Positions 26,296-62,407 of a DNA stretch of 64,000 bases are shown piece after piece; position 1 is the first letter of the stretch, and each line of letters starts with the position of its first letter. The notes beneath the pieces were generated by a model, which saw nothing but the letters and a program-made list of their open reading frames with translations, did no database searches and was not told where the DNA came from. The position numbers and the translations under genes are program-made. The stretch is from Syncephalis fuscata S228 (taxonomy: Eukaryota; Fungi; Zoopagomycota): positions 12,975 through 76,974 of the forward strand of contig JAHLTZ010000059.1 in the NCBI GenBank assembly GCA_025786725.1, given 5' to 3'.

Positions 26296-28345
26296 TTAAA
26301 TGGTTGGATATACGTCTTCGTTGTGATAATCATCAGCAAGATCGCCTCTCCAACTATGCAGTGAATGGCCAGTACCACTGTTAATAGAGTTGTTTATAAA
26401 CGATGACACTGATAATGATTGCAGTGTATTAATAGGTTCTGGCGCAATGACATTTACCGGAAGATTGGCTATTTCGTTTTGAAAAATGCTGGCTTGAGAG
26501 GGAGTTGAATTGATGAGACCGCCATAATGAGCCATTAATAAATGATCAGAATTAATTGAAAGCCTTAGCGTATCACGCACTCTGTCAGGCGAATCGCTTG
26601 CTGTGCTGTTGTTACATTGAACATAGTCATCGATGCTAAAAGTATCTTCACGTCGATCGGCACTACTTGTTTGCACTCTTACAGCTGCCTCAATGGCGGC
26701 TTTTTCCTCAGTCGACAGTATTTCATCTTGATCAGCTATTAAAGATGTATTGCTTGGTATGGGTGTATCGGCACGGCTATAGCGTATTGTTGCTGCTGTA
26801 CTGTTTGCAGTCTCAGCCATTTTTTCAACTGCATCAGCAAGTCCACGTAGCAGCAAATGATGCGAGTTCGACTCGCCACTTAAATTATGTGGACTGTTTG
26901 ACCGTAGACTAGAGATGGTATCACGTGGCGATGTACTGGATTTTGTCGACGTATTCTCGTCCTCCAGCTCAGCGCTAGGCTTCAGTGTAATTATGACATC
27001 ACTAATGCCCTCAGGACGACTTTCGAGGGTATTTGCGCGATTTACAATGATTGCCGTTGGTATCATTAGCGCATTGCCGTGCTGGGAGATACGCCAATCC
27101 ACCGATGATGCCGACATGCTTTTTGGTCGATTGTTGCTCGTGCACTCACCTGTGTTTTCGACCATCAAAGAGTGGCTGGTCCACTGCTTTCCATTACTGT
27201 TTGGCGCAGCCATTAGGGCCGATGTTCGCCGGCTTGTTTTGACATTTACTTCTATATCACTTAATGTATCCCATTCATTTAATCCGGCATTATAGCGAGA
27301 CTGTCGTGCGGTGTTTATAGTCATTTTGCTACTTGTATTTATGGAATTGTGTTGCGTCGACTGGCGAGCAATAGATGCTGCTTTTGCCGCCGAATTGATG
27401 TAAATACGCTTCATTATGACGAGTACAATTCCAGGCCACCAAAAAATATGAATAGGTATTTCCATAATTAAAGAAAGCCAGAATCGACTCATTACTTGAG
27501 TGTGAAAAAATCCCCAAGTAATACAGATTGATGTGCCACCAAAACAAACTAACCAATTGTAAAGAAAGGTGCGCTGTAGATGATGTACCGAGGCCATTTC
27601 TTGGCCATTGGCATTGGATGACTTGTGAAGTTTAGATTTTCTCGAATGATAATAAGCAAAGAAATGCAGTAGTAGCAAGCAACGGCGCCAAGTATTATTA
27701 AATTTATAGACCACATACTGTAGCCCCACTGTAGGCCCCAGTCAAACAATTCCCAGTCTCCAATGTCTGCGCCATGACCGCCTATATAGACGAATGGAGC
27801 CGTCAAGCAAGCACCCCAAAGCATAAGCACTGTAAAACAGCTGACAAATATCCAGCGTGACGGCACCCAAACTGTCAGCTGTGGACCATACATGTTTGGA
27901 TCATTATCACAAACTGAATTGCCAATCCCTCGAACAAACACTGGCGGAATAGCTTCAATAATACCGGCTAGAAACACGGTAACGCCCATAGACCAAACCA
28001 GTACGAAAAGTCATTGAAGAGTTCGCGTGTCGCAAATGTTGGTAGTGCATCGGTGAGTACCAGAATTGTTTGAATTAACCGGGTAACACATGCACCTAGA
28101 AAACAGCCTATCATTCCGTCGGCTGGCAGTCGAACTATCTTTCCTGATCCAGAGTCTGCCAGTAATGTTGGCCAAAGGTAATGCCAACGGTACCACAGTA
28201 AATAGCCACCAAATATAATTGGAACTGAATGTGCAACTAAACTGATATACATAATCCATCGATGAACCATTTCGTGTTCACACTCGTAGATAGAAAGCAT
28301 CCAGTAGCATTCTCTTCCAAATGGTGCGGAATCTGGAAACCTCAT
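26296..28345 (-). CDS. Seven-TM GPCR-like protein, C-x8-C family, paralogue R1
   Basis: CYWMLSIYEC, GGYLLWYRW, LPADG, TRLI, RELF, FLAGIIEAIPP, GADIGDW, IFWWP; long Ser-rich tail. Three ORFs join by restoring one G (~27986) and one A (~27638). Confidence 0.8.
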
Positions 28346-29926
28346 TTAGGCAAGGATTTTTAGCTAAAAAATATTATTACGCAAGATAAAAGATCTATAG
28401 TGTATATGAGCAAGATGGTAACAAGCAATTTTGAAATAATGGTTTAAAAACAAGTCCTGAAAACATTTATTTTCTCCTTTAACATACTGCAGAAAACTAC
28501 AACTATGACTGGCGTTTATAGTATAAGGTTCAGCCCAAAGTTATGTAATCTTTCTTATGAAGGATACCATCAACCGTGGATCCTTACAGTCACTATAGAC
28601 GATCAATTGCAACGATCTAAGCCGGTGATCAAATAAATCCAGTTTGCAACTAATGTGCCATTATATCAGCCGTATTCTAGCAAATTATGCTATGTTTAGC
28701 TTTAATATGTAATTTTATAGTCATAATAAAGTAACAATAATATAAAAAAGAACAAATATTGAGCAATATTGTTTATTGCCAGTTGTGTTTGCTTATTAAG
28801 TGCATATTTTCATCTTATCATCTTAATTTGGCTTGAATAGGTTTATAGTACAATACAAATGAATTAAAATATATGCTTTAAGCGATAATGTAAAATAGTT
28901 TAAAGGGATAGCATAGTGTTATGCGTAAGTTTAACAATTGGTGTCATAACTATTAAACTTTACCATGCTGCTATTCCCCGGCCTATTCCAGATTATGATC
29001 ATATAGCATTGCGTATTCCAGCACCGTTAAGATTTATTTTGCCTATGGCAATTTGAAGCAGTTCTATAAAAAGTGCGTATTAGCTATTGTTTGTATAATC
29101 TGGGACGACACATGGTCAGTGTGCTACTATGATGCAAAGATCTGCATAGCGCATGAGATAGCAGGACTGCTTTTGTGTCTGAATCATTTCGGAAGTGCTT
29201 TTGGCAACAGCTTTCATCCATTGCCTTTGTACAACAAGTAGGTATACGGATAAAGAAAGTCAAGTAACGGCACTTCCAAAACAAAAAAGGCTGTATGACA
29301 CAAATTTAGAAAGTAGGGCGTTACTTGGTACTGGGCAATAGACTGGCTACTAGTATACTCTTTGCTCTGTGTGATGGCTTACAATTTAAGAAAATATGCC
29401 ATGATCCGCGCCAATGGTACAAGAGCACCGCTGCAACTTATAAAACAAACAGGATTTTAAGCCAGGATACATATATTATTCTGGTTATGTTGCACAAGAC
29501 TTAATGGCTCGCCGCTTGCGGAAATATTCTAGGCAGCATCATCAGCTGCACGCCATATCGTTTATTTCAAATTTCCGGCATGTTCAAGGAAATGCTAAAT
29601 TCATTTTGTTCCGTATCCGACGACTTACACAGTCCTTGAAACCATTTCTAATTTAATATCGCAATAGTCGTATCAGCTCAGAGAGCAGGCCTGTGCCTGT
29701 AAAGTACTCATTTTGAGTGACTGAATATATAATTGCCACCTTAATATGGTTGCACCTGGCACTAGTTTTATTTTACCCTTCAAATTTATCTGATATTAAT
29801 TTTCATTTCATGCAGACACTTTGTTTGCAACGTTCGTAATTGCGCATAAACTTACAGCTGTGCTGTAACTTGCGGCTTTTATTTTATTTTATTTTAGTTT
29901 ACCATTAACATTCATTATTACTGCTC

Positions 29927-31276
29927 ATGCACTTCAAAAAGCTGTCCCTTTTGATGGAAACTGCTTGTGGACAATCAATATTTATGACTGCAAGCAGCAA
30001 TCAGTGTTTATTTTTGTAGCTTCGCCAGCTGTGCCATTTATGGCATGGCTGCACTTATGGGAGTTTCCTTGCTAATTTATCGCTACCGACATGTTTGGTC
30101 GGTTGAAACGCGCGTTAACAGTGCTCGATTGATTCGACGCCCCGTTGACTGGATGATTGTTCATTTGGCCTGGTGCTCATTCGCACGTTCAGCGTACACT
30201 CTTTTGTTGGCAATTGACGTAATTCCAGGTGCAGCCATTCGCCAGTTGATTCTGGCATTTACCAATTGGGGCTACTTGTGGGCGCTGGCTGTTTTTCTGG
30301 CCGGTGTGGTAGAAGCATTATTTTTAGTTTTACAACAAACTTCTTTTGAAACTAACTTTCGTTGGTGTCGTGACACAAATCAGCCAAGTAGCCCAGGACG
30401 AGGAACGAGAAAGTTTTGTGGCATTTCACTACACTCGATAATGGAGCGAGGTATTCTGATGGTCATTGGACTCATAGTGTGCGTTGTGCCATGTACGGCC
30501 ACTGCTCTTTCGTATATGGCTGGTCAAGCACTAGATACAGAAAATTGGGATGAATACGCAAGACTAGAGCAGCTCAGTTGGCTAACTTGGACTGCAGGCC
30601 TAGGATGCTTAGCCTTTTTGGCTTCACTCTATCTGGGCTCTCTTTCATCTGTTCTACGCCAGTCGGCAAATCTATTACGCTTAAGCGCTGCAAGTTATGA
30701 CGCTGATACATCGCAGCAATTATTATGGCTCATCAAATTAATGATATGTTTTTATATTAGCAGCACGTTAGCATCTATTGCTCATTCACTATTATTTTCA
30801 ATAATGTTGGCTCATTTCTACCCAAGTATTGCTTATTTTGCCTTTTTTGAAGTAATTTGGTGGCCATGTCTTACTTTGATTATATTTATTGTTATTAGTC
30901 AAAATAGACAACGGACGCCTTCAAATACATTTGAAAGCAATCAGTCCAACACATTGCCAGCTTTATGGCACTCTGGCTTCTCCAGAGGACTTGCCCAAAC
31001 TTCAACACAAAGCCCAGGAATGCTTGCGCTCAATAGAAGCATTTTTCAATCCCAAATTCTTTGCATTCTGAGGATAACTTTTCTGTTCATACCTGGTCGC
31101 CTTTAATAGATAATGACACAGAGATAACACCAATACTTCCTATACGAACCTGCTCATTACCTCGTGAGTTGCCCCCATCACCCTCTGTCTCTGTTACAGT
31201 AGTTATAGAAAAGTCATTTATGGATGCGGCTGTAAACGCAGTGCCAAAGCACAAGTCGGTGCCAAACTTTTTCTAA
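29927..31276 (+). CDS. Seven-TM GPCR-like protein, C-x8-C family, paralogue R2
   Basis: Upstream of ORF 30045 the DNA encodes MHFK(K)AVPFDGNCLWTINIYDC after two homopolymer corrections. Then GVSLLIYRY, RPVDW, ARSA, RQLI, FLAGVVEA, ALDTENW, VIWWP; tail continues into ORF 31061..31276. Confidence 0.8.
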
Positions 31277-31680
31277 TACGAATAAGCCGGTGTACCTCCT
31301 ACGCTGTATAATTGTGACGAATTCAGGCTTGTCAAAGTGGGTGCATTTATTTATTATATAAGCCAGTAAATCATTGCTTTATTTCTTGAACATGTCAGCG
31401 TGCAATATTTTTATGTGGGTTGGCCTAAAAGTGTCATGCGACGGTAATTTTTAAATAGTAATCCATTTAAAATATTTTTTGTCAATGCTGTCATTATTTT
31501 ATTAATGACATTGTTCTATGAATATGCTTGCCTTTAAACAATTGATAATAATCTTTTACTCCTTAATTATTCTCGCTGTTTATTTGTTTTACAATACTGA
31601 ACTTTGATATAAAATAAAACTTGAGTATAATTTATCGGCTAAATTCATACATTTATTTAAACAATTAAATTATTTAATTA

Positions 31681-31830
31681 TATTGTGATTTAGTAACCAA
31701 ATGACTAAACTTAATAGATGATGCGTATTTGATGACTGATGTCACTCATCACCCATCAGCATCATGTTAATAAATTAAATGTTATTAGATGTTAGTCATT
31801 TGCCCAAAGCACACTATGGTTATTAATAAA
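31681..31830 (-). mobile_element. Short MITE-like repeat (family A, mini form), inverted partner of 24043..24188
   Basis: Reverse complement TTTATTAATAACCATAGTGTGCTTTGGGCAAATGACTA...GGTTACTAAATCACAATA aligns with 24043..24188. Confidence 0.65.
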
Positions 31831-31902
31831 TTGTTTAATATTTGCAATATCGTAGTATTTATCTATTTATTTCGTTGCACTTGATGCCGTACTTTTGTCT
31901 TC

Positions 31903-33907
31903 AATCCGCCACGAGTTGTAGAACACGAATGCGGTTGTTAGAAGACATTTTCTGCTTGGAATTATCAACCAGATCCTGTTCTTGCACGCCAATAACTATG
32001 TGTATATCCTATTAGCTAATCGTATTAATACATTGTCATTTACCTTCTGCTAATTCTTGGACAACATCATTGGGCAGCCATGCAAATCCATTGTTTGCAG
32101 CAATACTTGGCCACCTTACTGTCAAGTATTCTATACAATTCTAATAAAGTTGCATAATATTGCCATGTTAGGATCGGATATTTCAATCTCATTATACTGG
32201 CCATTTTCCTGTTTAATTGGTTGATCGTTGGTTATAGATTGATTTAGATTTGTTGGTACTGTTGTTGCGAATAGTATTTCTGTAGTTAATTGAGATGAAA
32301 AGAAGATGATATTATTCAGCATTTTGAAAGCGACGTTCTGTCTCTTTACAATAAGCTTTTTGATTTCCATGTAAATCACTAGTTTATCTCGCTCTCGACC
32401 AGAAAGAGAAAGCATTGCATCTAACCATTCTTTAATTATCTCTGCATTCCAACCAACTAGCAGCTTTGGCAAATCTTTATCAGTCGTTAAACAGCCAGAA
32501 AATTCTTTTGCAGCACATTCGATTGCCCGACTATATATTTCATCATTCATCAAATGGACCTGTGACATCCATTGGGAGGAGTTTGAAGCACCAGCTATCG
32601 CTTTCCGTTCTGAAAGCTGCCATTTCAACTCGTGACATCGCATCAATGTATCAGCTATTGAATTAGGCGTACATTTTCCAATACTAGCTGTAAAATCTCA
32701 TCACGTTTTTCCTTAGATAAACGATTAACAAAGTTTGCCGAAAGCCAGGCCCGGTTGTAGCCATGAGTAAGAACATAATTGCAGCCTTTTGTTAATGCAG
32801 TCAAGTTGTAGCGTTCCGAAAATGATAAAAGACCGGGTATCTGTGGTACACACGTATCACATATACAGCGCAGACCATGAAGGCGATGGACTATTCGGTG
32901 CAAGCAATAGGAATGTAGAGATGGGAAGTCAAGGAAATCGGCTGCACGCCAAATAGCCGTCCAATCTGCTAATGTTAGTGTGGCTTCTTTTTCAGCTGAA
33001 GCAACGCTAGAGCCTGTATAAAGAAAATGTATCATATATGGCAGTGCGCGCGCAGGAACGCAACTATCTGGCAGGTGAAATTGCCCTAAAGATGATTCAA
33101 TATAACGATCATCAACAGATAGCATAGCTCGGAAATATCCAGATCGTGCTGCTAGAGAAATCGGTGTACGCGCTCTTCTGTCTTTTGCTCCTTCAATATT
33201 TTATCTGTATCTTCAATGTCTATAACCAGTTTTGCATCTCCGTGAGCACGGCTTGCTAAAAGACAGTCTAGCGAGGTAATAGCAGCGTAATAGCTACGCA
33301 GTTCAATGGCTGAACTAGATGTCGAATTCCATACAAGCTTTGTATCTGATGCCGTATCGTCTCCACTTGTAGTACTAGTGCTATTATCATAAGCTGTATT
33401 TGTTGTACAATTGCAACGACCGTAGCAATGCAGTATAGCTTGGTGTGTTTGCAAGCCATCAATAGTAGTATCGGCAAACATCGGCGCATCACAGTTAGTA
33501 TCACCGCCAAGAATACAAATAGCTCCGCTAATTCTTTGCCCAGACATGACTCTGGTCGAACAAGTAAATGGCGCAATTCCTTAGAGGCATGTGGTAATAG
33601 AAAACGTTTAGAAGGCTTAGTGTTCTTGTGTGCCATAGTAAGTCCAAGTAATTATGGAATTCAAAAACTACAGCGTGTGATAAAGACAACGATTATTCAT
33701 GCTGGAACATTTCAAAGGTCTTGTGATTAGTAATGTACACGACGCTAAATAAAACGTGTGATCCATCCATACAAACTCTTTAGCATGAATGAATACGCTG
33801 CTGCTACGATGTTTAAAATAATGATATATTCCGCCATATACTGTAACTATATCACTTGGTAAACGAGTAATACAAATACACAAGTAATTCCATATTATTA
33901 GCTTCAT
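31903..33907 (-). CDS. BTB/POZ-domain protein (ends approximate)
   Basis: RVHRFL(L)AARSGYFRAML...ALPYMIHFLYTG...AIWRAADFLDFPSLHSYC is a typical BTB signature. Split by several single-base frameshifts. Confidence 0.72.
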
Positions 33908-35245: not shown

Positions 35246-37465
35246 ATGACACCAGAGTCGACTGCGCCAGAATGGACTCACCATTGTTATTGGCTCACTG
35301 AAGTGCGCAATTGTCGATACGATAATGTCCACGAGAATATTGTCATTTTCAGTTTATGTGCGCATGCCATTCCAATGTTGGTTGGAACACATGCACTATG
35401 GCTTCGTTATCGACACTTATGGCGCGGCCTATACTGTCGTATTCGCGGCCATATTGTGCCATCCACCGTTGAATGTTTGCTTGTCCTTTGGACTGTTGAA
35501 AGCTATGCTCGCGTTGCCTTCTTGCTAGTTACTCTTTTGGGCGCTTGGCCTAGTCCAGTATGGCAAGAAGTGGCGTTTAGTGTTGCTATTTTTCCGTTTA
35601 TATTTGGTATTATTCTCTTTTTGTGCGGTTTAATCGCCGCCATTCCGCCGTCACTTACCTATACGCACCATGTTAACGCCGACGGCACCGACAGCTTTCA
35701 CTGGAGTTTTTCGCATTGGTCGAAAATGCCACAGCGACTTTCCGGCGCTGGTGTCTACGTACCATCCATCCGTGCTTTGCAAATCACTACTATTATCATC
35801 ATGCTTAGTATAGTAGGGGCCATTATCCCACTTTCCGTGATGAATGGACTTGCATGGTCGCAAGGCAATTGGGACGCGCTTCTTTACTGGCGAAAAATCG
35901 AATTTCTCGTTTGGGGTGCCCATGTGTTTATAATCTTCGCTATTACCATCTACTACAGCCGCGGTCTATCGGCCATCATGAGAGGCAGTCTTCAAACGCC
36001 CGAATCAGAACATGATAACACCGAACACGGCTTTACTTCAACCGACCTCTCGATTGAGCACGGTCAACGCCGAACCAACCGTACCATGAATCAACGACAG
36101 TCCTATCCAATTCAAGAAAGCTTTGTCGAACCGGAGGCCCGCCCAAGATGGCCACTGGCTTTTGTGAAAAATCCTTTGAACCGTCGCCAAGATAGTAGTA
36201 ATCAGGCCGCAGTCAATGCTGCTACCCGTGTTGAACACATTTTTACGGTGCTTCATATTGTAACGGTCTTATTTCAATATTCGCTATTATTTGGGCTTTT
36301 ATTAATCATAAAATTATTTCCGATTCTGCGGCAAATATTGCTTTAAACATTGGTATGAATGGCATCGTTCTACCATTTACCTTAGGATTTACTTTGTGGA
36401 AGCTGCAACAGTCAACACTGGCCACATTGCATACACATCTTTCTGCAGTCTATGAAAATACCAAAAATGCACTCTATCGCGTAAAAAATGCTGTACGCTA
36501 TCCTCAACACATCATTAGTGATATTGATGGTAAAGATGACTATGACATTGACGAATCCGTCAACGGTTTTAGAAAGCAGCCATTTGAGATGGCCGAAATC
36601 GACGAGGACCGCTACAACTTTTTCAGGCAAAACGAAGAGTATGTATGGCCAACAACGGCAGCTGAAGAGCAACTTAACCGAACCAACCGACCGGTAAGTA
36701 AAATATAACTAATTTGTGCTGCTATTACCATTTATTAATATTCATTATTTTATTTAGCCAAGTGTGCCGTCAAAAACAAAACTATTCAAGAGTGCATCAA
36801 ACGAAGATATTACAGAATTTAGTAGTAGTTGGCGACTACAAGCGGCATTTCACCCCAACGTCCGTCATCATCCTGTGTCTATTATCAACGGACCTGCCGT
36901 GCCACGAGCCATCCACAATGACACTGATTTGCAACCAGCATGGTGTGATCGTAGCGATATTAGCATTAAAGAGCCATGGATCCATGTCGAGAACTCTTGC
37001 GCAAATAATATGGATTTTTCATCTGATGCTATGCCACAAAACAAGCATCTTGATATGGAAGAGCTTGATGCGTTTGGCCCTCATCACAACTTTTACACAA
37101 GTCCGCCACGTCCACAATCACCTGATCCATATGATCGGGGATTCGCCAGTGATGCAGAACCTGTTAATTATTATTTACGCAACAGCAATAACAATAACAA
37201 TATTAATACTGTTACTGCTGCTACCAATAATAATAATAATAACATTGATAATATTAGTATTGATATTAATGATAGCAGTCATCATCACTACGACGACGAA
37301 GATGATAACGAAAATCATATAAGCAGTTGGTGGACAAGTGCCACTCGGCCATCACCTATCATAATGATATGGATAACTCGTCTGATGACCAAGAGTCAAC
37401 TCTGTACAGTAATCCCTTTCCAGAAGTATAGTCGCCACTGGCACCATAAGCCATTAATTCAATAA
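35246..37465 (+). CDS. Seven-TM GPCR-like protein, C-x8-C family, paralogue R3
   Basis: CYWLTEVRNC, GTHALWLRY, STVEC, ARVA, QEVAF, FLCGLIAAIPP, AWSQGNW. Restoring one T near 36272 gives TM6-7 (FSIFAIIWAF...NIGMNGIVLPF). One intron (~36694-36758) in the long Asn/Asp-rich tail. Confidence 0.8.
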
Positions 37466-38866
37466 TTTAATAACTATAGTTTAAAAATAGCCGTATTTAA
37501 TTCAAATCATGCCCATTTATCAGCATTATTACTAATAGTACTATTATTATCGTCATCATTGCCATTATTGTTAGTCATTTTGCTTTTTTTCTATAAATCT
37601 TGTTGCATCTATTACTATTTACTGCTGTTGTCCGATAATAAATCTAGTTTGTTTGTGTAAAGTAGCCATTTGCTACAACATCAAATCAATAGATTGCTGA
37701 TAGATACACGTCATTTGCAACACGTGCTAAATTACCCAATTAGCTGGTTCTTGCTAAATACACAACTACCGTATTCCGAGTTCAAACGGCTCTTTCTTAG
37801 TGTGTAACCATCGCTACAAGGAACAGCATAGGCGACATCCTAGTAAGTTTACTGTTATGATTGCGCAACTGCACATCGGCACATGATATCACTCGTCAAG
37901 TATCAGCTGATATGCACCCTGACTTTAATAGAACTAACATAGTAAAACTTGCAGTTATAGCAGCATTTGTTATTTTGATATCATACGGAAATGGCGAGTA
38001 TTTATTCGACTGTCCCAATATAGTATCGGCGATGACTTTTGTTACTAAATAGAACTAAATATAAAACATTCCACATGTGAAGACTTGAAATAAAAGATCT
38101 TTGCTCTTTATTATTTAGTATAAACTATTCATTTAGCTATCTATGTTCTGCTTATACGCAAAATAGCACTACTGGAATAAATAAACGCAATGGTTACATT
38201 TATTTCTATTTACTAACGACTCATCCTACCATTATGGCAGGTTATCAAATTGTGTCGATGTAACGATAGCCGCTGCCTTAATAGCATTAACAATACACAT
38301 TCGGTGAATCAATTTAAGTTGTACACAGACACAGACGCCCCGTCCGCACTACCATCATGGTTACAATGATTATCGTTACAGTAGATTGACAGCAACAACA
38401 ACAGCTACTACGATATAAGGACCATTTTCTTTATTATTATTAGTATGTCGCCTTTTTTGCCCTTTTTTCGCATTCCTTGATTTTGTTTTCTGTGCAGTGT
38501 TGTTGTTAACGATTTATTTGTTGGTTACTGTGCCGATACTTACGTTTCCTTTTTTTGTTCTAACTAACACATCACACCGTTACTGCATACCAGTTACTTT
38601 ACGATACCGTTCTAACGAATTGATGTTCACATTTTGTTGTGAAAAACCAACTTTTTTGTTCAAATTTAATTGATGTAATTACAGAGCTATTGTCTCTTTT
38701 GAACTTGAGTTTGTGCGTTTAATGGCCCCGCCATGATTAAACAACACCTACTATTTATTCTATTTATTCTATACTTACTGGCCATCAGTGATGTTGCACT
38801 ATCAACGGAACCATCTATATCCAGACAACTAATAGCAATAATTCCAATCATTATGATCACGATTCA

Positions 38867-40682
38867 ATGGGAATGAATGGCCCATCCTCTGATGAACAAC
38901 CGCTACCTAATTGTGACTGGCGTCTGTCGACAAGCAAATGCTATGCCAGTTGGATACATGAAGGTATTCTAGGCACGAGTTTAGGCTGTTACTTTTCCCT
39001 TATTCTCGCCGGCACTATACTATTACGACGTCGATGGAAGGTTGACTGGACACTGTCACAGCTCGATCGCTCCTATGGACATGCTAGGGCCGATGATGGC
39101 GGTATTCGGCGCTACTGTCCTCTTTTTCGTCGTCTCGTGCACTACACTTATTGTAATGCACAAAAAGCGCCCACCTCGCACCATAGTCGACTCGGTTCGC
39201 CGAACAACAACCATGACGATACAGTGCACTGCAACGTACACGGCACTGGTCGTTGGTCGCGCATGATAACCTCCCCCGTCGATTGTCTCTTGCTATGCTG
39301 GACATGCTATGGACTACTAAGGCTGATCGGGGTCACCATTACTCTACTCGGATTTATTAGCACAACGGAGATACAAGAAGTAGTATTTAATCTATCGCTA
39401 TGGCCAGCCTCTATTGGGGCCATCACTTTCATGGTGGGCCTAGTAGGTGGTGATCCACCTCGACGTCTTATCAACTGTTCAAGTAATAACGGCCAGCCAA
39501 AATACTGGATCCATAGACCACCTATTTGGTGTCTACAGTTTATTGCTCTATTCCATTTAATTGTCTATCCGGTTGTCACATTAACTTGTTCTATCTATTC
39601 GGGTATTAAGGCTGATTTATTTGATTTCTCGTCATCGCTGCAATGGGATAATATTTCTATATTATTCTGGTCTATTCAAACCTGGCCGTTTGCCATTATA
39701 GGCGCCGTTTATATGATTCATTGTTTACGAGTACAGCGTCGCTTTAATAGCCCGATTTATCACGAAGCAGCCCCATCTAATAGTAATGGCAATGGCCATG
39801 GCCATACAATGACTTGCCAGCCGCTTAATAATGAAGAGCTGCTTTATATTCGACAACTAAACCGTATCTACGGCACTGTAGCTGCAGTAGGCATTGCCGT
39901 TGGTCTATGGACACTTACCGCCTCGTTATTGCCTGTACGCCGTATTGGTCATACTGTCACCTCATCCATGTTAAGCAATATTGCCTTTAACTGTATTGCC
40001 CCCATTCTAGCTATTGTTATTATGATGACTGTCTAAACAAATCACGTGTCTACAAAGGCTTTTACAGCACTAATGGAAGTTATCGAATGTTATGGAGTTC
40101 CGATAAACGCTTATCTCCTCCAAAGATGATGACAGAACAACAACATCCATGGTCAACGAGCAATTCTATTTATTTACCAAAAGGTTCACTTCATCCAACT
40201 GACTATCTTCAGCAACAAGCCATTGTTCTGATATACTTGAAAGTGTTCATTCAATGGAGATGCGATCACCTTCACCTATGAAACCACCTCCTATAGCCTA
40301 TCAACGCAATGATCGACACCATCATTACCAGCAACAGTTATATCATACCAATTCAACTGCTACCACTACAGATCATGATTATAGTAGGACTAGTATAACC
40401 AGTGCTACTAGCTATACGCACTATGATGATCAAACGGGCAAACGCGTCTTTATTGAAGGGCGTGGTCCTCGAGTGAGTGCCGTGGGCACCCATAATAATG
40501 GATTCTTAACAGTGGGCACCTATAACGAAGAACGACTCGTTAATAATGCCAGTGAATATATGTCACCACGAGGTTCGTTCTCTAGTGGAGATGGACGTGG
40601 TTATATTATTGAAATGTATTCAGTGGAAGAATCAGCTTATATTGAACGTGAAATTACTGATAGTTGTGATAGCCGTGTTTAA
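38867..40682 (+). CDS. Seven-TM GPCR-like protein, C-x8-C family, paralogue R4
   Basis: CDWRLSTSKC, GTILLRRRW, SPVDC, LRLI, QEVVF, FMVGLVGGDPP, NIAFNCIAP. The tail appears to continue via indels into ORFs 40087 and 40254. Confidence 0.8.
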
Positions 40683-40792
40683 ATAAATATCATGTATTGT
40701 TAACAACATTAACACTGGTGTAAACATTAACACGTTAGATGATGCATTTGATAATAACATAATATTAATTAATTAAAGTAAATACGTTCAAT

Positions 40793-49770: not shown

Positions 49771-50919
49771 ATGCGTACTTATTCTTCTTTGACTTTTGCC
49801 TGCTTCTTGGTCGCTGCGCTGGCCCGCATCGATACAACAGCCGCTCTGCCAACCTACAACAGCTATGGAGCTCCCGCAACATACACTGCACCAATGGCTA
49901 ATCACCAACGACCAGAATTTGGCCATGGACGTGAAATGAACAACCGTGACCACGAGCGTTATGGCAAGCCAGCTTATGGTGGCCGTCGCCCTGAGGACTG
50001 TGACGACGATCACAAGCCAGCATATATTACCAAGCGTGGCTACAACGACTACTCGGCCAAGCCAGCCGGTGGACGTGACCACGACCGCGACTACGACAAC
50101 CACGGCAAGCCAGGCATGGGTCACGGCAACGACCACCATGACAAACCAGCTCACGGTGGCCGTCGTCCTGAAGACTGCGATGATGAGCACAAGCCAGTGT
50201 ATGTCACCAAGCGTGGCTACAACGACTACTCGGCCAAGCCAGCTCATGGCAATCGTCCTGAAGACTGCGATGACGAGCATAGTCAAAAGCCAGCTGGTGG
50301 CCACGACCACGGCCGCGACTACGACAACCACAGCAAGCCAGGCATGGGTCACGGCAACGATCACCACGACAAACCAGCTCACGGTGGCCGTCGTCCCGAA
50401 GACTGCGATGATGAGCACAAGCCAGTGTATGTCACCAAGCGTGGCTACAACGACTACTCGGCCAAGCCAGCTCATGGCAATCGTCCTGAAGACTGCGATG
50501 ACGAGCATAGTCAAAAGCCAGCTGGTGGCCACGACCACGGCCGCGACTACAACGACCACGGCAAACCAGGCATGGGCCACGGCAACGACCACCACGACAA
50601 ACCAGCTCACAATGGCCGTCGTCCCGAAGACTGCGATGATGAGCACAAGCCAGTGTATGTCACCAAGCGTGGCTACAACGACTACTCAGCCAAGCCGGCC
50701 GGTGGTCGTGACCACGACCGCGACTACGGCAACCACGGCAAACCAGGCATGGGCCACGGCAACGACCACCACGACAAACCAGCTCACGGTGGTCGTCGTC
50801 CCGAAGACTGCGATGATGGGCACAAACCCATCCCAGCTCCATACATTCCACCACGCAGGTAAGTTATTTTTATTCCAAATACATTTTTACTAATATATTT
50901 CTCGATTAGTGCATACTAA
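49771..50919 (+). CDS. Secreted Kex2-processed repeat protein (KEP-like peptide precursor), His/Asp/Gly-rich
   Basis: Signal peptide MRTYSSLTFACFLVAALARIDTTAA; four Y[IV]TKR|GYNDYSAKPA junctions at 50032, 50209, 50437, 50665; seven RPEDCDD motifs. Terminal intron 50859..50909 gives ...PYIPPRSAY*. Confidence 0.88.
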
Positions 50920-51376
50920 ATAACTGCTAAACTTTAGTTTGTTGGCATTCAATTGGTGGATATATAGACGTCCAATCTTTATACTTAAAGATTAGCTCAA
51001 TGTTTTCACATTGCTTACAAAAATAAAACAGCTTTAATTAAAACAACAACTTGGTTTACTTGTCTTTACAGTATTAAAATGTGGTATTTTTTTAATAAAT
51101 TACAATGACACTACAAATACGATAGTAATTATAAGCATATACAAGTGCGCAAAATATAAGTTAAAAGATTATATATATTATTAATAATAAAAAGCAATCA
51201 GCTGCGTAGCTATTTTTGCATAAGTATAAAGTAACGCCTGAATATAGTAAAATTTGTGTAGTTATGGCTCTTGAACGTAAGAAAATTAAATAATTTGTCC
51301 ATATTTGGTAATCATAAACCACTAATTTTTCCACGTTCAATGACCATAAAATATATTTTGAAATTGGGCAGTACAC

Positions 51377-51454
51377 GACATTAGAGTCTAAATAATCACT
51401 ATCATAGATTTATTATCCAGCACGCATATATCCTCTACCCACATATATCATTTT
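51377..51454 (+). repeat. Degenerate fragment of repeat family A
   Basis: GACATTA...AAATAATCA...TAGATTTATTATCCAG...ATATATCCTCTA...TATATCATTT aligns loosely with ~59905..59995. Confidence 0.45.
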
Positions 51455-52284
51455 ATTGCATAATTTTATGATCTACTGGCCACATTTATTCATTATATTA
51501 CAACACAATTTGCCTATTCTATCCATTAAGTTGTGAGTGTTATAGCTTTACTTCCATTATTCATAGACATTTCATTTTTTATTGCTACTCGTAGCATATT
51601 TTCCTACACGATTGCGTCTCCTCAGTCTCCCAATGATCAATTGTTAATAAAAACTACTTAGTTTATTACTTGTAACGACTAAGTAAACCACAATGATTCT
51701 TTGGCAGTTAGCGACTACTGCAGTTTGACAACAATAAACTGAATAATGTTTGTAGCTAAAACTAGAAAAAATAAAACGAGGTAACTGATGATATTTTATT
51801 TGAATGATAAAAATATTCGCATATTTATGCTGAAATGCTGCGTGTACATTAAATATTGTTTAATAAAATTGAACGTTTTTTTCATTCATGTGGCGCTTAT
51901 CAGTTCATATGACTGACTATATAAGTTGAATAGCAGATTGGTTCAAAGATCATTTGTATTATTGATACTGTGGACTATACTTAGAAATAGTTAATGCCGC
52001 TATATACTTACGAATATTCGCACGTATATTGGTAACTTCATTGGACTATATGTATCGGATATGCCATACGCTCGGTAGCTCATGTTGGAACAATCAATCA
52101 TGTAACTTATCAACGGTATTTATAATTATATCTGGCCACGTGATATTAATGTGTATTTAATACCTTTTAGATTTTTTGATATAATTAATATAGTTATTAG
52201 TGCATCTGTAGCAGCGTATAATATATGGATAGCTATTGGCAAAATATATCATAATTACATTGTGTGATTATGTAGTTATTGCAA

Positions 52285-53044
52285 TAATGCGTTAATAAAT
52301 GCGTAAAAATAGCAGGCTTTTACTGTTTATGGCTTGTATAACTAAAATATAGCAAAACGATTGCCGGATTCAAGTTTTTTATGTTTAGGTGCTGCGTCTG
52401 GTATAAAATATAGAACAGCGATTTTTGCAATAAATGTTAGCCAAAAAACAATTTACGTGTAAATAGCTAACAAAAAAGCAACTAAACTTATGATTTAAAA
52501 TCTCAATATTAAACGAAATTTGGTATAAGATAAATCCAAGCGCTCTAAAGCGCTAAAGCGAGCATAATGGCTTGCTATTATGCAGAAATACTGATATACA
52601 ATGACAATTTATGTCGTATACACATATGTATAACGTAAAGCTTTGTTAGTTTATATCGCATAAATCGTATTTTTGGCCAACTTTTGTTGCAAAAATCATT
52701 ATTCTACAAGCCATAATAAACGGTTTATTTAAGCATGGAGAACTTGAATCCGGCAATCGTTTTGCTATATTTTAGTTATACAAGCCATAAACAGTAAAAG
52801 CCTGCTATTTTGCACATTTATTAACGCATTAGCACACTCATTGTTCCATAAAGCAATACAATTGCAATATATTTTGTCGATAGTTCCATGTATGCTATAT
52901 GCATGCTTGTACAAAATGTCAAGCAATTTGATTCATTTTTAGTAAAGTTGTATATAGATTTAGTAACGCTTTATTAATTAAGTTATCACCATTAATTTAC
53001 ATTTCATTGCATTTTACTGACCAACTATACTATGATTATCTTTT
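52285..53044 (-). mobile_element. Foldback/MITE-like repeat (family B), right inverted copy
   Basis: Near-identical reverse complement of 46966..47720; one internal arm is truncated. Confidence 0.8.
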
Positions 53045-55065: not shown

Positions 55066-57754
55066 TCAATCGTCCCAGCCATTTTCTTCAACTGCTCGGC
55101 GTGCCTCTTGTTTAGCTTCTTGAATCCAGGTACGAAGGAATTCATAGCGTTCTTGCCGTCGACGAGATGCTGTCCCGCTGGCCCGTGTCATAAGCTGCTC
55201 TAATACCTGGGCCGCTTCTTCTTGGACAGCACGATCAGTAGCCATTTTCCATGTACGTTCTGCCATTTCACATCGCTCAACATCACTGGTTAGACGCCGG
55301 TAAAGACGTAGATGTTCCTTGTGAGCGTCTTTAAATAGACGATATAGTTGTCGTAGATCAGAGCGTGTAGTGACAGTCGGTGGATGTTCAGGTAATTTTA
55401 CAGGCTTATGCATTGGTTCTCTATTACCCGATACTGTGGGAACAGCCATGGTAGCTGTAGCATTTGAAGTAGCTATAGCCGTGGTAGTAGTTGTAGCACT
55501 TGGAGTAGCTGCACTGTTAGTGGTAGATATAATGCTTGTTGTTTCATTGGATATTGTTGGTTGAGTAGCTGGTGTTGTAGCTGGAACAGCTGGTCGTGCT
55601 GAAGCAACCTTAGTCGTTGGTGTAGTAGAAGGCGTCGTCAAACGAGTTCGTTTTATCGATGGTTTACTGCTGCTAGAAGCTAGTAAGGCTGTAGCATCTG
55701 CTTTCTTTGACTTTGTCGCTGGCAGTGATCGTTTAAGCGATTCATTGCCTTCTGAAGATAGCGATAATTTACCTGGACCTTCTGATTTTTCTACCAGCGA
55801 CGAGTCAATATCCAAATGGGCTGTGGGTGCTGGTGTCACTGCCGCCCATGGACTTGGGATAGATGGCTCTGTTGGTTCTGTAGCCTTTGTTGCTGCTGTA
55901 TCTGCTGCTGCTGCTGCTGCTGCGACGGCGGCAGCTTTTTTGGATTGTCGTTGACGTTTTGGCTTAACAGGTGTCGTTTCCTGTGTAGTAGATTCTGTTT
56001 CAGATGCAGTAGTTGATGTTTTTGTACTAGTAGCTGTTGTAGATCCTGGTCGCTTGGACATTGCTGTTAATTTAGCAAGAGTAGAAGCGCCTTTTTTTCC
56101 TCCAGATGTACTATTATTTTTATTCTTAGTTGCCGGCGTTGTAGTTGCAGTAATCGTTGTAGCTGCTGCTTTTGCATCATTTGTTATTACTAGAGTATCA
56201 CTGCCGGGTGTAGCTGTAGACGATGTAGTGGCTGATGTTGAAACAGGAGACGGTAAAGATGGATAGTTAGCTAATCTACTCCATGCTGGATCAGCTTCTG
56301 AAAGTCCTGTACATTCAAAGACTGATCGCATTGTCGATGCAACCTTCTTTCGTTCATCTTCTGTCCAGCCAGGCCATGTATCTACCTGTATTTCGCTATA
56401 GCTAGCATCTTGTAGTACCCAAGCATTGTTGGTAAAGCGGCCCACCTAAACATAAATAAATAAATACCAGTTAATGCACAATTTAGCTCTACTTACTTGA
56501 CGTAATGTCTCTCGAAAGCTGTCGTCTTCTGTTGCACCAGCTCGTTCCTGTGCTTGTTTAAATTCCATGGGCTTTAGCGCTAAAGCATGTATTACTCGCT
56601 CTTTTAATGTGCCTTTGTGATCCCAACCAGCTGGACGTGTCTCTGGTGCTAAAAGCATAACACGCTCCCGTGCATCTTCTGATAAGCCAAGTTTATCAAA
56701 TGCTTGCTGTGCTAGCGAAATAACCATGGCCCGTTCCTCGTCCGTATAATCCCATTCATAAATCTGTACATCTTGATAACACTCTGGCTTTAAATAGTAG
56801 ATTGAGCCTTGTCTGTCAGATAGCTATGTATCATGATAATTAGACACCAATTAATTAGCATATTAAGTCATAATATTACCCGTGAAAGATCAGCCGTTAA
56901 TGCTTCTGGTCTCTGGGCCATTCGTGTTTGTAGTGTGCCAATGTCAATAGGACCCATAGCTAATAGTTTCAACAGACGTGCACGTAGCGGCATACCGTGT
57001 CGTTTTGGCGCAGACGTAGTTTGATTGGCGGCTACCGCTGCAAGTGCAGCAGCCTGTGCAGCAGGTGAATCTACACCATAAGCCGACGATCCAGCATTAC
57101 CGCCGGCCAGTTTTGCTGGTGATCGTGCTGTATTAGCCGCACGGGCCGCAATTTGCTGAGGTGTCAGCGCCTGCATGCTAACCGCGGCAGGAGGCTGGTG
57201 CCGATGTCGCCGACTATCAAGCTGCGATACAGACGGTGCACTAATTGTTATTTATGCATACACCCTATCAGTATCATAATACTTGATACTATAATCCACC
57301 TTACCGTCGTATGGCTGACTCCGTATCGACAGCACGCTGCGTTCGGAATGGCTGCGCTGGCTGTTTCGCGGCAGCTGGCAGCGCCGACGATCCCGACATC
57401 GATCGGCCGGTAACTGCATATACTTGTCGCTGCGTTCCTAGCAGCTGGAGCGCCGAGGTATCGCCGGGCACTTTACGATAAACCTCACGCACTTCGCGAT
57501 CCCCAGCTAGAACGCGGCGATCTAGCCGGAATGTGGCCTCACCAATATGTAGAAAAGGCTCGCCCTGTATAACCGGTCAGTTTATAGATTTCTAGCTACC
57601 CGGTATAAATTGGTTTTACCTGTTCAAACACCACGGTACAGGAGTCACCGCGGCGCAATGCGGCGAGTGTCTCCTCAGTCAACCGCAAGCCAACAACTGG
57701 ACGTACGCCTTTGTTCGGCTCGCAACGCAGCGCCAAGGTTGAAGTCCAGCTCAT
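55066..57754 (-). CDS. RNA polymerase II elongation factor ELL-like protein
   Basis: N-terminal GLRLTEETLAAL; LKERVIHALALKP...WPGWTEDER (ELL middle domain); low-complexity linker; C-terminal occludin/ELL-like VTTRSDLRQLYRLFKDAHKEHLRLY. Confidence 0.75.
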
Positions 57755-58601: not shown

Positions 58602-59660
58602 ATGAAAGCTCTTTATCCATCTTCCGATGTACTATGTACACCTCATATCAATCTATATGACTGTGCTGGTCACATTCCACTATCCTATGCAGCAGCCGTA
58701 TGTGCTACTGTATCATCTTTGACTTTTTTATTTGGCCTTGTAGTCATTCTTTATCGTTGGCATCATGGTATTCTAACTGAGCTGTTTCGTCGAGTTAATG
58801 GCTACTGGATACCTGTACCGCTAGATATACTTATTGTTGTTATATGTCCAGTAGAAGCGCTAAGATCTATTATGTACATTCTAGTGCTTCTTGACTGGCC
58901 AAAAAGTATGGTTTTCCGCAATGTTCTTGGTATGGCAGTGCTGATTTTATTAGTATTTGCCGTTACACTGTTTGTCTCGGGTATCATTGCTCATATCCCG
59001 CCTGTGTTTACACGCACAAGTTGGTCCAAATCAAAAATAGCCGTCACATGTGGGGGACCATGCAAGCTATTTGTACCATCAACACGAGTAGTTTATTGGA
59101 CCACTGTTGTGTTCTGCACTCTTATTTTGCTATTAGGCTTTTGTACAAGCGCAATTGTCGGATGGGGCGAGGAACACGGGCTGGCCGCCGTAGCAAAAAA
59201 CGCACATAAAGGCGTAGCGTTTACACTTGCCATTAGCATTCTTATCATGTTCATTGTCAATGGCTATTACAGTTATGGCTTTTACAAAATCCTTTGCAGC
59301 CACGTTGAGCGCTCTTCCAGCCAAGGATTAGTAAATGGCGCTGAAATTGATGCAGCTCGTCGCTTTCGAAACATGTTTCTAGCTGTTATTGCAGCCTGCA
59401 TTCTTGGTTGCACATTTGCCGTGCTAAGCGATGTATTATCCGAACAAATCAGCCGAATTCTATGGTGGAATGTTACCTTTTCCGTTATACGCTATGGCGT
59501 ATTTTTCCCGGGCATTCAATGGATATTATATTATAATATCTTCCAAAGTTCACAAGTCCGTGTGCACCGTGCTACTTCACATGCCGCTGCTACAAAAACT
59601 GGTGCTTCTGAAATGTTTTCCAGTCCGTGCCATAGTATACATCAAGCTACCGCCGTATAA
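58602..59660 (+). CDS. Seven-TM GPCR-like protein, C-x8-C family, paralogue R5
   Basis: Uninterrupted 352-aa ORF: CTPHINLYDC, GLVVILYRW, VPLDI, LRSI, RNVL, FVSGIIAHIPP, GVFFP; seven hydrophobic segments; short tail. Confidence 0.82.
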   Translation: MKALYPSSDVLCTPHINLYDCAGHIPLSYAAAVCATVSSLTFLFGLVVILYRWHHGILTELFRRVNGYWIPVPLDILIVVICPVEALRSIMYILVLLDWPKSMVFRNVLGMAVLILLVFAVTLFVSGIIAHIPPVFTRTSWSKSKIAVTCGGPCKLFVPSTRVVYWTTVVFCTLILLLGFCTSAIVGWGEEHGLAAVAKNAHKGVAFTLAISILIMFIVNGYYSYGFYKILCSHVERSSSQGLVNGAEIDAARRFRNMFLAVIAACILGCTFAVLSDVLSEQISRILWWNVTFSVIRYGVFFPGIQWILYYNIFQSSQVRVHRATSHAAATKTGASEMFSSPCHSIHQATAV

Positions 59661-59791: not shown

Positions 59792-60653
59792 GAACAAGTG
59801 GTGAGTTTTATTTAATCATCACATCATCACACTTATTGTGATTTAGCGGCAAATGATTACATTTAATAGCATTCAGTTGATTGAACTGATGGTGGGTGGT
59901 GAGTGACATTAATCATCAAATACTCATCATTGTAGATTCATTATCCAGTATACATATTCAGTATACATATATCCTCTATTCACCTATATCATTTCTATAC
60001 TATTCCACACCGCCATATACCATTCTACAATATACTAGACACATTCCGTTTATTATATACTCCAACGCACTACACTCGCCTCACTTATTACATTATACGC
60101 ACTATAACTTCAACAGCGTTTTATATGCCATTCAATAATTATCTAACCTTCCTCTATCCAAAACTGCTTTTATTTTTGTTCTAGCTTTATTATTTATAAA
60201 TGTTGACTAGTTCCGCTCATTGATCATGCATATATGCTCAATAGCTTTAACAGAGCTAATCGCCGTTCAATATTGTATCTTCGTTATATTGCATATTATT
60301 TTATTATATATTGAACATGCGCTGTCTGTAGCTGTTGTCTGTTTGGTTCTAGCTCAGTTATTAATGTTTCAACTAGTGTCAGTCATTCGTCCATCAGTTT
60401 ATATGTACTTGAAATTTATAGCAAACAAATGTATTCAATATAGCATAAAACTATATATAATAGTATAAATTTACAGCGATAATTATATAGGCGGATAAAG
60501 GATACAAGTAAATGGTGGATATATGCATACTGGATAATGAATCTACGATGATGAGTATTTGATAACTGATGTCATTCACCCGCCATCATGTTTAATAGAT
60601 TAAATATTACTAAATACAGTCGTTTGACCGCCAGAAAACAATATAATTAAATA
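59792..60653 (+). mobile_element. MITE-like repeat (family A, long form, 862 bp), right inverted copy
   Basis: Reverse complement of 53976..54837. Confidence 0.82.
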
Positions 60654-60961
60654 AAATATAATAATATTATCATATAAATAAAATGGCTAAATGAAGTACT
60701 ATATATAGAAAGACTATGGATAGACTAGTCATTACCAAAACCATTAAACTGTTGCATAGTAGTAATGTTTTTATATTGATCATCACTGTTTAAGTACAAT
60801 GATTAACAAAACATTCTCAACAGCGTATAAATGATATAAATAAAAACAATACGTCTGTAATAATTATATGCTAAATATTTCAAGTTAAATTTTACTTAAT
60901 AAAACGCAACGATGAAGGCAACCATTGTACAAACAATAAACACATCTATTTTGTTGGTTGT

Positions 60962-62407
60962 TCATTTGTTATAAGAAGAATTTGTTGGTGAACCATATTG
61001 ACCAATGGTTTCTAAAGAATATTCGTTATGATAGCTTAATACTGAAACTGCATTAGACATGGCTGAGGCGTTATGTTCGGATAAAGAATGGGCCATAAAG
61101 TAAGCACCAGTTGAATCTAGACTGGATATTTCCACAAGCTCCGTAAGATTTGTTGGTGAGCGGCCACGCGATACTAACGGCCGAGTAGTAGACCTGAGTG
61201 ATGACCGCGATGTTTTTGATACAAGTTGCGATCGGCTGGCACTGGCTGCTGCGTTGTTGTATTCATTGGTTTCACGTGCCATGCTAGGCCGCGTATGAAT
61301 AGAATAAGTAACAGCCGTTTCAATGGCTCTACTTCTATTTGATTCTATTGTGGATGAAGCATGAATACGACTGAAAATCGCCATAATAAAGCATGGCCAA
61401 CAAAGTACTAGCGTATAAATTTCAAGAATGCCACTGGCCGCTTCATTGGATAATATCTTTCTTTTGGTGAAAGCACCAATGCTGGCAGAAACCGCTGTGG
61501 TAGCAACTAGTATTAATTCTAAAAGCAGCGTGCGTTTTAATTGACGGATTGTCCGAGCTCGTGCCACCATAGCATTGCTATGATAGTTGATGGTGCATGA
61601 CGACATTGAGGATGACCTTGGCTTATTTATATAACACCCTGTCGATTTAATCATTGCTGCAGTAGGTATAGGTGTTGTATGGTTGGCCGTAATAGCTTGA
61701 GCTGAAGTTGATTGCTGAAATAGATATTCTTGCTGTCGTAGCAACGATGCCAATGCACCAAAATAACAAGCACTTACAACTGCAATAAGTAACATAACAA
61801 AAGACCAAATAAACCACGTAATTTGATTCCAAAATATGTAGCGTGACCATTCGCCACGATCACCGTATTGGCCGGCCAGCCACGCTGTAGCGCTTGTAAT
61901 AGGCGGTACGGTCGTTGCTAAAACGCCAAGTCCACCAAGAACCATTTGGTACGGCGGGGCTTGCCAGCGAGTTTCCTGTAGGTTGGCCAGTACAGGTGAT
62001 ACTGTTTCAATTACTCCGGCTGTGAATAGCAACGTGCCGAAATAGCCACAAACAAACGATAGGCTAGAAAGTGGCTCTCTTATTGCTAATTTCGGTGCAA
62101 CATCTAACAGACAAATAAGAATATAGATTGTGCGCGTCATAAGGAACGCAGAAAAGCAAGCGACCATGCCATCGACAGGTCGTGCTATATAGCGATGTGA
62201 TACATTGGTAGGTGTATCGTGTTGATGGCTTCGTCGCCAGAAATATCGACGCCTCCAAAGAACAAAGCCACCCAGCATTGTTACAGCCAAATGAATGGCA
62301 ATAGCGGCATAGCCTAGTCCGTGGTGCCACAGCTCATTTTCGCAATCAGTTAGATTGACGGCCCAGTCACATCCTGGCGCAAATGGTGGAGGTATATCAA
62401 AATGCAT
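60962..62407 (-). CDS. Seven-TM GPCR-like protein, C-x8-C family, paralogue R6
   Basis: Uninterrupted 481-aa ORF: MHFDIPPPFAPGCDWAVNLTDC, GGFVLWRRR, RPVDG, TRTI, REPL, FTAGVIETVSP, YGDRGEW, LCWP; seven hydrophobic segments; Ser-rich tail. Confidence 0.85.
   Translation of the reverse strand: MHFDIPPPFAPGCDWAVNLTDCENELWHHGLGYAAIAIHLAVTMLGGFVLWRRRYFWRRSHQHDTPTNVSHRYIARPVDGMVACFSAFLMTRTIYILICLLDVAPKLAIREPLSSLSFVCGYFGTLLFTAGVIETVSPVLANLQETRWQAPPYQMVLGGLGVLATTVPPITSATAWLAGQYGDRGEWSRYIFWNQITWFIWSFVMLLIAVVSACYFGALASLLRQQEYLFQQSTSAQAITANHTTPIPTAAMIKSTGCYINKPRSSSMSSCTINYHSNAMVARARTIRQLKRTLLLELILVATTAVSASIGAFTKRKILSNEAASGILEIYTLVLCWPCFIMAIFSRIHASSTIESNRSRAIETAVTYSIHTRPSMARETNEYNNAAASASRSQLVSKTSRSSLRSTTRPLVSRGRSPTNLTELVEISSLDSTGAYFMAHSLSEHNASAMSNAVSVLSYHNEYSLETIGQYGSPTNSSYNK

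Follow-up and report, generated by a model that had tools for sequence, protein, structure and literature searches.

What are the six split and unsplit genes lying between positions 26296 and 62407 of the DNA considered here, and what might they do for the fungus that carries them? The stretch analysed (the window, 64,000 nucleotides) is C327:12975-76974 in the assembly of Syncephalis fuscata S228 (29.4 Mb in 371 contigs), a haustorial mycoparasite of the Zoopagales, and positions given without a contig are those of the window. An earlier note, made from the sequence alone, had taken the six genes (R1 to R6) for diverged members of one unassigned family of seven-helix proteins resembling G-protein-coupled receptors (GPCRs) and marked by two cysteines, C-x8-C, near the N-terminus. 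The results below support the conclusion that the six are paralogues of one such family. It is a genuine family that lacks annotation, and probably a receptor family of GPCR fold that belongs to the early-diverging fungi and has expanded in mycoparasites of the Zoopagales, with its members acting at the cell surface.

Do the six genes belong together? Each of the C-x8-C motifs translates exactly as the earlier note had quoted it and at the place it implied (Table 1), with Trp at +2 in every copy save R5. The remaining motifs follow in the same order in an alignment of the six: G-x6-R-[WYR] at the end of the first transmembrane helix (TM1), P-[AVL]-D ahead of TM2 (TVE in R3), an Arg within TM2, [RQ]-[EQN] at the entry to TM3, F-x-x-G-[ILV]-[IV] at its exit and a Pro in TM7. 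For this alignment R1, R2 and R3 were read through the breaks in their frames, X being placed at breaks that lack read support and the transcript base at the others. The variable tails were said to be mostly rich in Ser and Thr, and these two residues make up 24-32% of the tails of R1, R2, R5 and R6.

Table 1. Features of the window, with the position of the C-x8-C motif where there is one (ORF, open reading frame; aa, amino acids).
Feature	Positions	Strand	C-x8-C motif (positions)	Description
R1	26296-28345	-	CYWMLSIYEC (28280-28309)	about 684 aa: seven-helix core and Ser/Thr-rich tail of about 360 aa
R2	29927-31276	+	CLWTINIYDC (29962-29991)	450 aa after adding three transcript-supported bases
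R3	35246-36705	+	CYWLTEVRNC (35285-35314)	two frames
R4	38867-40682	+	CDWRLSTSKC (38912-38941)	seven-helix core at 38867-40033
R5	58602-59660	+	CTPHINLYDC (58635-58664)	unbroken 352-aa ORF
R6	60962-62407	-	CDWAVNLTDC (62342-62371)	unbroken 481-aa ORF
Aminotransferase class I/II gene	42707-43971	+		two ORFs (split)
GDSL lipase gene	45093-45629	-		lies between receptor copies
ELL-like gene	55066-56445	-		faint match

A profile (A1) was built from nine sequences, with R1 to R4 excluded: besides R5 and R6 it took in four unbroken paralogues that lie on other contigs, and three orthologues from Syncephalis. It matches these four at E-values from 1.3e-14 (R4) to 5.6e-27 (R2), R1 being found in pieces (2e-22, 2e-19 and 6e-09) and R3 likewise (2.7e-24 and 5e-04), which bears out the significant profile similarity expected among the six. 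Compared with one another by BLASTP, 13 of the 15 pairs match at E <= 2.3e-05. In a wider alignment both cysteines occupy identical columns in all 95 members, which were selected for having the motif. C-x8-C falls within the first 150 residues of 109 of 129 proteins (the search matches together with R6 and the Syncephalis relatives of R6). Where the motif is missing, the alignment in most cases starts inside the profile, and these proteins look truncated at the N-terminus. The consensus of the family is CD[WF]R..[IV]..C. The ORF of R6 matches an NCBI hypothetical protein of S. fuscata, BDF19DRAFT_426871, with 100% identity over 95% of the query in the best local alignment.

What fold do these proteins adopt? 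An AlphaFold model of residues 1-375 of R6, computed with the 95-sequence alignment, reached a mean predicted local distance difference test score (pLDDT) of 89.3 and a predicted template-modelling score of 0.87; with the nine-sequence alignment the pLDDT was 67. The helices of the model span residues 25-63, 77-100, 107-142 (two segments with a short break), 153-183, 187-242, 274-320 and 322-369, so that the seven-helix core occupies residues 25-369 and is followed by the Ser/Thr-rich tail. The N-terminal Cys loop is modelled at a pLDDT of 92-97, and the third intracellular loop, long and basic throughout the family, is disordered. The hydropathy peaks of all six proteins broadly agree with seven helices, TM7 of R5 falling under the threshold. 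An exhaustive comparison with 48,161 PDB representatives gave, for both models, best 50 matches that are all of GPCR fold (Z 14.0-16.6 over 220-320 residues). These range over class A (CB2, CB1, S1P1, GPR6 and others), class B (GLP-1R), class C (GABA-B, GPR156), class D (Ste2), class F (Smoothened, Frizzled), LYCHOS/GPR155 and designed soluble GPCR-like folds, and among these 50 there is no microbial rhodopsin, PAQR, PQ-loop protein or transporter. Foldseek likewise listed GPCRs only (E about 3e-3). A fold search of the ESM Atlas returned unrelated folds (acyl-CoA dehydrogenase, AraC) at template-modelling scores of 0.2-0.4 and was discarded. The seven-helix, GPCR-like fold that had been predicted is upheld by the model and by both structural searches, and a GPCR fold, with no class singled out, is well supported as far as modelled structure can tell.

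Which residues has the family kept? Conservation was counted over the 95 members, with residues numbered as in R6. In the N-terminal loop C13 and C22 are present in 100%, D14 in 72% and W15 in 57% (with Phe in a further 18%); no other Cys is conserved. R53 at the cytoplasmic end of TM1 is kept in 85%, and P75, P77 and D/E79 stand ahead of TM2. R92 in TM2 (79%), D102 in the first extracellular loop (72%) and R110 at the entry to TM3 (76%) are followed by a group at the exit of TM3, made up of Y/F128, G131 (89%), I/V132 and P137. Farther on are P151-S152 before TM4, then G179; TM5 has W201 and, towards its cytoplasmic end, Y214, G216, L219, I222 and L223. TM6 has no conserved motif, and TM7 has a single Pro, P338, in 53%. 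The polar residues among these are found mostly in the extracellular half of the predicted fold, as would be expected if they formed a pocket for a ligand or, alternatively, a network keeping the N-terminal loop in place above such a pocket.

The orientation of the proteins in the membrane may be judged from several features. Lys and Arg are richer in the segments predicted to be cytoplasmic, chiefly the first and third intracellular loops and the tail; an N-x-T sequon lies within the Cys loop of R6 and of several paralogues. Together with the Cys pair and the Ser/Thr-rich tail, these favour a topology with the N-terminus outside and the C-terminus inside, in which a disulfide between the two invariant cysteines would probably close a short extracellular N-terminus. 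Members of the family would then be surface receptors that bind their ligand on the extracellular half, at a site formed by the Asp and Trp of the N-terminal loop, the Arg of TM2, the Asp of the first extracellular loop, the Arg atop TM3 and the Trp atop TM5. The signal would pass to the cytoplasmic face and there reach a fungal G-alpha or factors that read the phosphorylated tail. S. fuscata does have genes for G-alpha, at two loci on contig C306. Coupling to G proteins, chemoreception and a role in sensing hosts, all raised by the earlier note, are so far inferences.

How widely is the family spread? From a set of 1.84 billion clusters at 50% identity, the nine-sequence profile picked out 127 representatives with E <= 1e-3, and taxonomy was looked up for 30 of the 127. 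Among these are members from the Zoopagomycota (three Syncephalis species and Thamnocephalis), the Glomeromycota (Entrophospora, Funneliformis, Dentiscutata), the Mucoromycota (Bifiguratus, Calcarisporiella, Spinellus, Gongronella), the Mortierellomycota (Linnemannia, Podila, Entomortierella) and the Chytridiomycota (Spizellomyces), besides three unnamed metagenomic or Logan sequences; none of the 30 comes from Dikarya. A word-indexed protein search with the 95-sequence profile returned only four close Syncephalis proteins and added no taxonomy. Run against the S. fuscata genome, the 95-sequence profile matched 54 pieces, which amount to about 30 distinct loci once apparent duplicate contigs, judged by matching scores and lengths, are discarded. 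The lineage-expanded array of the earlier note therefore stands in part: the family is expanded, with about 30 loci in S. fuscata and a clade in the Zoopagales, but it is not specific to a lineage, extending as it does over five early-diverging phyla.

Two further tandem pairs of the family lie elsewhere in the genome, at C306:343226-346490 (L008) and C24:172890-175726. A weak match to Pfam 7tm_1 (18.5 bits, at C306:343874) covers the TM5 region of the first gene in the C306 pair. Copies of the R5-R6 pair are found at C185:3450-7264 and C356:22390-26191, identical to it in protein except for one stretch of 94% on C356, and contig C163 mirrors C306:916-919 kb. The copies on C185, C356 and C163 look like haplotigs or redundant assembly, which inflate copy counts.

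Did the cluster arise by recent tandem duplication? The tree used was a quick maximum-likelihood one (LG+G4, with support from the Shimodaira-Hasegawa-like approximate likelihood ratio test only), and I draw on just its starred clades and its groupings. The six genes fall in a starred clade of 45 rows, in which every named member belongs to Syncephalis or Thamnocephalis. The closest company of R1 there is P0019 together with a protein from Thamnocephalis; R3 groups with P0037, R4 with P0057, and R6 with P0002 and P0003. R5 lies among several S. fuscata paralogues, and R2 stands alone on a long branch. Since the six sit in separate subclades, the cluster holds old paralogues; R1, R3, R4 and R6 each have close relatives of their own, and the notion of a recent tandem array must be given up. 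R6 shares 57-63% identity with its orthologues from S. plumigaleata and S. pseudoplumigaleata. Gene order is also preserved in S. plumigaleata, where the aminotransferase and GDSL lipase genes are followed by the ELL-like gene and then by an R5-like and an R6-like gene. There too a family member adjoins the R6 orthologue in convergent orientation, as R5 and R6 do here, and the R1 orthologue in S. plumigaleata is also adjoined by a family member.

Why are four of the six genes broken? R1 to R4 each change frame in the assembly, as the earlier note had it when it counted four of six as split. The region 26200-32100, which covers R1 and R2 only, was checked against one public sequencing run that contained 57% of the sampled words. 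The run is of RNA or cDNA, as shown by a splice joint of 48 nt (GT..AG) in the adjacent minus-strand gene (31995-32044). Contigs from the run differ from the assembly by six single-base insertions (after 27633, 28985, 29946, 30023, 31044 and 31924) and by no deletions. Four of these sites are within receptor genes (after 27633, 29946, 30023 and 31044), and the bases absent from the assembly at the remaining ones are in intergenic DNA and one neighbouring gene. Because all six differences are bases that the assembly lacks, outside the receptor genes as well as within them, they point to a systematic error, and the dropping of single bases by the assembly is the simplest reading of the split ORFs. 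It probably extends beyond this region to the whole assembly. Split ORFs in the S. fuscata assembly are accordingly weak evidence for pseudogenes, as ordinary genes get broken by dropped bases. The indels for which the earlier note had advised repair are thus real as frame breaks in the assembly, but in the places tested (R2 and one break of R1) they are bases missing from it.

A single unspliced contig of 1754 nt spans R2 (29616-31366, depth 162), and the bases it adds after 29946, 30023 and 31044 give a single ORF, MHFKK...VPNFF. R1 is broken twice, near 27983-27987 and after 27633, and is covered by two contigs, 26223-27862 and 27995-28417, at a depth of about 8-10. The former inserts G after 27633 and so joins the second and third frames; the first break lies outside contig coverage. 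P0019, an intact relative of 595 residues from an S. plumigaleata contig (78% identity), is continuous over that first break, reading GLWAVTVFL, and the corrected frame of R1 agrees with it through the loop region. R2 is therefore shown to be transcribed, and the frames of R2 and of part of R1 are intact in the transcript contigs. Introns were considered as the cause of the splitting of R1 and R2 and were rejected: successive pieces of the profile match, though each is in its own frame, touch or overlap one another, so that there is no space for introns, and the transcript contigs are unspliced there.

R3 has TM1 to TM6 in one frame (35246 to about 36320) and TM7 in another (from about 36330); its 3' end is uncertain and may extend towards 37465. 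P0037 is 69% identical to it over 35258-36226. R4 carries an insert of about 60 residues in the first intracellular loop, and a conserved C-terminal region of about 140 residues lies in a different frame from its core, at 40242-40682. P0057 (from S. pseudoplumigaleata) and P0107 align to R4 over 38798-40042 in frame 2 and again over about 40242-40691 in frame 3. In the C-terminal region R4 is 49-55% identical to the tails of these two proteins, as compared to 41% over the seven-helix core. The region (40242-40682) has no match in Pfam; possibly it is a cytoplasmic domain that only the R4 subfamily has and conserves.

Several considerations weigh against regarding the family as intact surface receptors of GPCR fold. 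Helical bundles can reach Z of about 14 without homology, and the match at rank 50 still has Z 14.0, so the structural search favours no class. Comparison of the family profile with PDB sequences puts rhodopsin first (E 0.002-0.02) and then mostly class A, a marginal, if consistent, result. None of the sequence models of known GPCR classes matches above threshold. Class A receptors activate G proteins by way of micro-switches (DRY, NPxxY and CWxP), and neither these nor the cysteine pair that joins TM3 to the second extracellular loop is conserved among the 95 members. The arguments for the N-terminus lying outside are indirect. As to the state of the genes, the RNA depth of R1 is no more than 2-3 times the intergenic background. 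Over the 5.9-kb stretch compared, the contigs also differ from the assembly by 20 substitutions, all of them transitions, so that a different allele or isolate may have been the source of the run. The read evidence covers R2 and one of the two breaks of R1.

One may suppose that R1 to R4 are decaying pseudogenes of a once larger array, with R5 and R6 alone functional. The assembly has two breaks in R1, three single-base gaps in R2 and at least one frame change each in R3 and R4, and R3, R4 and the first break of R1 lie outside the read coverage. However, the transcript contigs fully restore the frame of R2 and one of the two breaks of R1, the six missing bases are scattered over intergenic DNA and a neighbouring gene as well, intact relatives run continuously over the first break of R1 and over both parts of R4, and no piece has an in-frame stop. 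I regard decay as very improbable. A different doubt concerns function rather than integrity: proteins of GPCR fold need not be receptors, and the family might resemble GPR137, THH1/TOM1 or the GPCR-like domain of LYCHOS/GPR155, its seven-helix members having a housekeeping or organellar task such as vacuolar or lysosomal regulation, or acting as scaffolds. The best structural matches do include LYCHOS/GPR155 (Z 15.2-16.3), the activation motifs of class A are absent, and the nearest named clusters by language-model features are THH1/TOM1 (0.89), PRRT4 (0.87) and GPR137_N (0.87). These scores, however, fall below the reliability line of the tool (0.9) and by its own calibration are leads only; the nearest clusters overall are unnamed ones from Mucoromycota (0.94-0.96). 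The Pfam model of THH1/TOM1 (PF06454) matches nothing in the proteins or in the whole S. fuscata genome at E <= 1; the Pfam library used did not include PF27607 (GPR137_N), and GPR137 was compared by features only. About 30 diverged paralogues with variable loops and tails fit a sensory repertoire better than housekeeping, and a conserved extracytoplasmic Cys pair, with a sequon in some copies, suggests an exposed surface. A non-receptor role is on these grounds unlikely, though it deserves to be kept in mind.

Could the proteins instead be true members of class A or of the cAMP-receptor branch, so divergent that the standard models miss them? Rhodopsin and other class A receptors do head the profile search of PDB sequences, with TM5, TM6 and TM7 aligned in order and the conserved Tyr-Gly of the family matching that of rhodopsin at the cytoplasmic end of TM5. 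Two of the 95 members match 7tm_1 (PF00001; best E 9.2e-05), the paralogue at C306:343874 does so weakly, and the automatic annotation of UniProt calls two members 'G-protein coupled receptors family 1 profile domain-containing protein' (a PROSITE label). On the other side, 93 of the 95 have no 7tm_1 match at E <= 1, the class A motifs and cysteine pair are not conserved, structural Z is equal for classes A, C and F and LYCHOS, and a comparison by hhalign of the family profile with a cAMP-receptor-like ORF of the same genome gave a probability of 0.3% (a weak test, one side being a single sequence). The matches to Dicty_CAR (PF05462) in the genome lie on contigs other than that of the receptor cluster. 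Of other models, the six proteins match nothing in Pfam-A at E <= 1 save a chance match to Pho86 (E 0.19), and hmmscan of the 95 members against Pfam-A gave scattered chance matches (Pho86, domains of unknown function), with models of known GPCR classes not among the families listed, 7tm_1 twice excepted. The earlier note had recognised no signature of Ste2, Ste3, Git3, cAR, PQ-loop or CFEM, and Pfam agrees, matching none of these and not THH1/TOM1 either. The Spizellomyces members stand outside the eight rhodopsin-family genes of that fungus (Krishnan et al. 2012, PMC3251606). Membership in a known branch therefore seems to me distinctly unlikely, and a separate family of GPCR-fold receptors is preferred.

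As an observation apart, three cAMP-receptor-like (Dicty_CAR) genes lie within 16 kb at C212:164229-180278, and one of them is the sole above-threshold match to 7tm_1 in the genome.

If the proteins are receptors, for what? As a long shot, the C-x8-C family might be the receptors, so far missing, through which 'zygomycetes' perceive their lipid-like or apocarotenoid signals, such as trisporic acid and its precursors. The disulfide-closed N-terminal loop would then cover a pocket, like a lid or a tethered element, and the conserved Arg residues of TM2 and TM3 would line it. A carboxylate ligand would suit such a pocket. I know of no receptor identified for trisporic acid or its precursors. Were the idea true, the expansion in Zoopagales would let mycoparasites of the Syncephalis type detect their Mucorales and Mortierella hosts.

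Other genes and elements of the window may be described briefly. At 49732-50862 (+) is an ORF of 376 residues with an apparent signal peptide and His/Asp-rich repeat units parted by Lys-Arg sites; to judge by its translation it looks like a Kex2-type peptide precursor, and it has no meaningful match in Pfam. The ORF lies within a cassette, 46986-53021, flanked by inverted repeats (549 nt at 94% and 177 nt at 99%). The spacing between the GDSL lipase and ELL-like genes is about 1.3 kb in S. plumigaleata as against about 9.4 kb in S. fuscata, and because of this difference the cassette looks like an insertion between receptor genes.

What follows if the family is what it appears to be? Fungal GPCRs have been catalogued by means of Pfam models and of classes first defined in Dikarya, and a family without a Pfam model is therefore invisible to such catalogues. 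The scale of what has been passed over is at least 127 clusters at 50% identity, in five early-diverging phyla, with about 30 loci in one 29-Mb genome of a mycoparasite. Its members are candidate receptors for the sensing of partners, hosts or pheromones in Zoopagales parasites, arbuscular mycorrhizal fungi, Mortierella and Mucorales, and I know of few receptors for such signals in these fungi. The family also adds a lineage of GPCR fold with its own conserved residues, which bears on the evolution of the activation motifs of GPCRs. A literature search, to which subscription journals were largely out of reach, found no description of the C-x8-C family, and it appears to be undescribed, although the PROSITE label in UniProt amounts to a flagging by machine of the GPCR-like nature of two members.

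How does the family compare with known systems? With class A it shares the order and packing of seven helices (Z up to 16.6, with CB2, S1P1, GPR6 and others), a marginal profile similarity over TM5-TM7 that includes the Tyr-Gly, and, as predicted here, a short N-terminus outside and a Ser/Thr tail inside. Unlike class A, it has a set of residues all its own: the C-x8-C loop, the Arg of TM2, the Arg at the entry to TM3, the G-I at the exit of TM3 and the single Pro of TM7. THH1/TOM1/TOM3, GPR137 and PRRT3/4 resemble it as orphan seven-helix proteins without large ectodomains. The known fungal classes (Ste2, Ste3, Gpr1/Git3, Stm1/PQ-loop, cAMP-receptor-like and Pth11/CFEM) are likewise fungal seven-helix proteins, and Ste2 is also a structural match (7ad3_B, Z 14.4); those classes, however, were defined in Dikarya, where the C-x8-C family is not seen among the 30 clusters looked up. 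The 'rhodopsin family' GPCRs of chytrids and Blastocladiomycota were found by means of Pfam 7tm_1, keep ERY and NP motifs and number eight listed genes in Spizellomyces (Krishnan et al. 2012, PMC3251606). The C-x8-C members of Spizellomyces, SPPG_05190 and SPPG_00997, differ from these in lacking ERY and NP and are not in the list (PMC3251606). Both kinds are nonetheless GPCR-like and, in the case of the C-x8-C family as far as the 30 clusters show, restricted to early-diverging fungi, and both occur in Spizellomyces.

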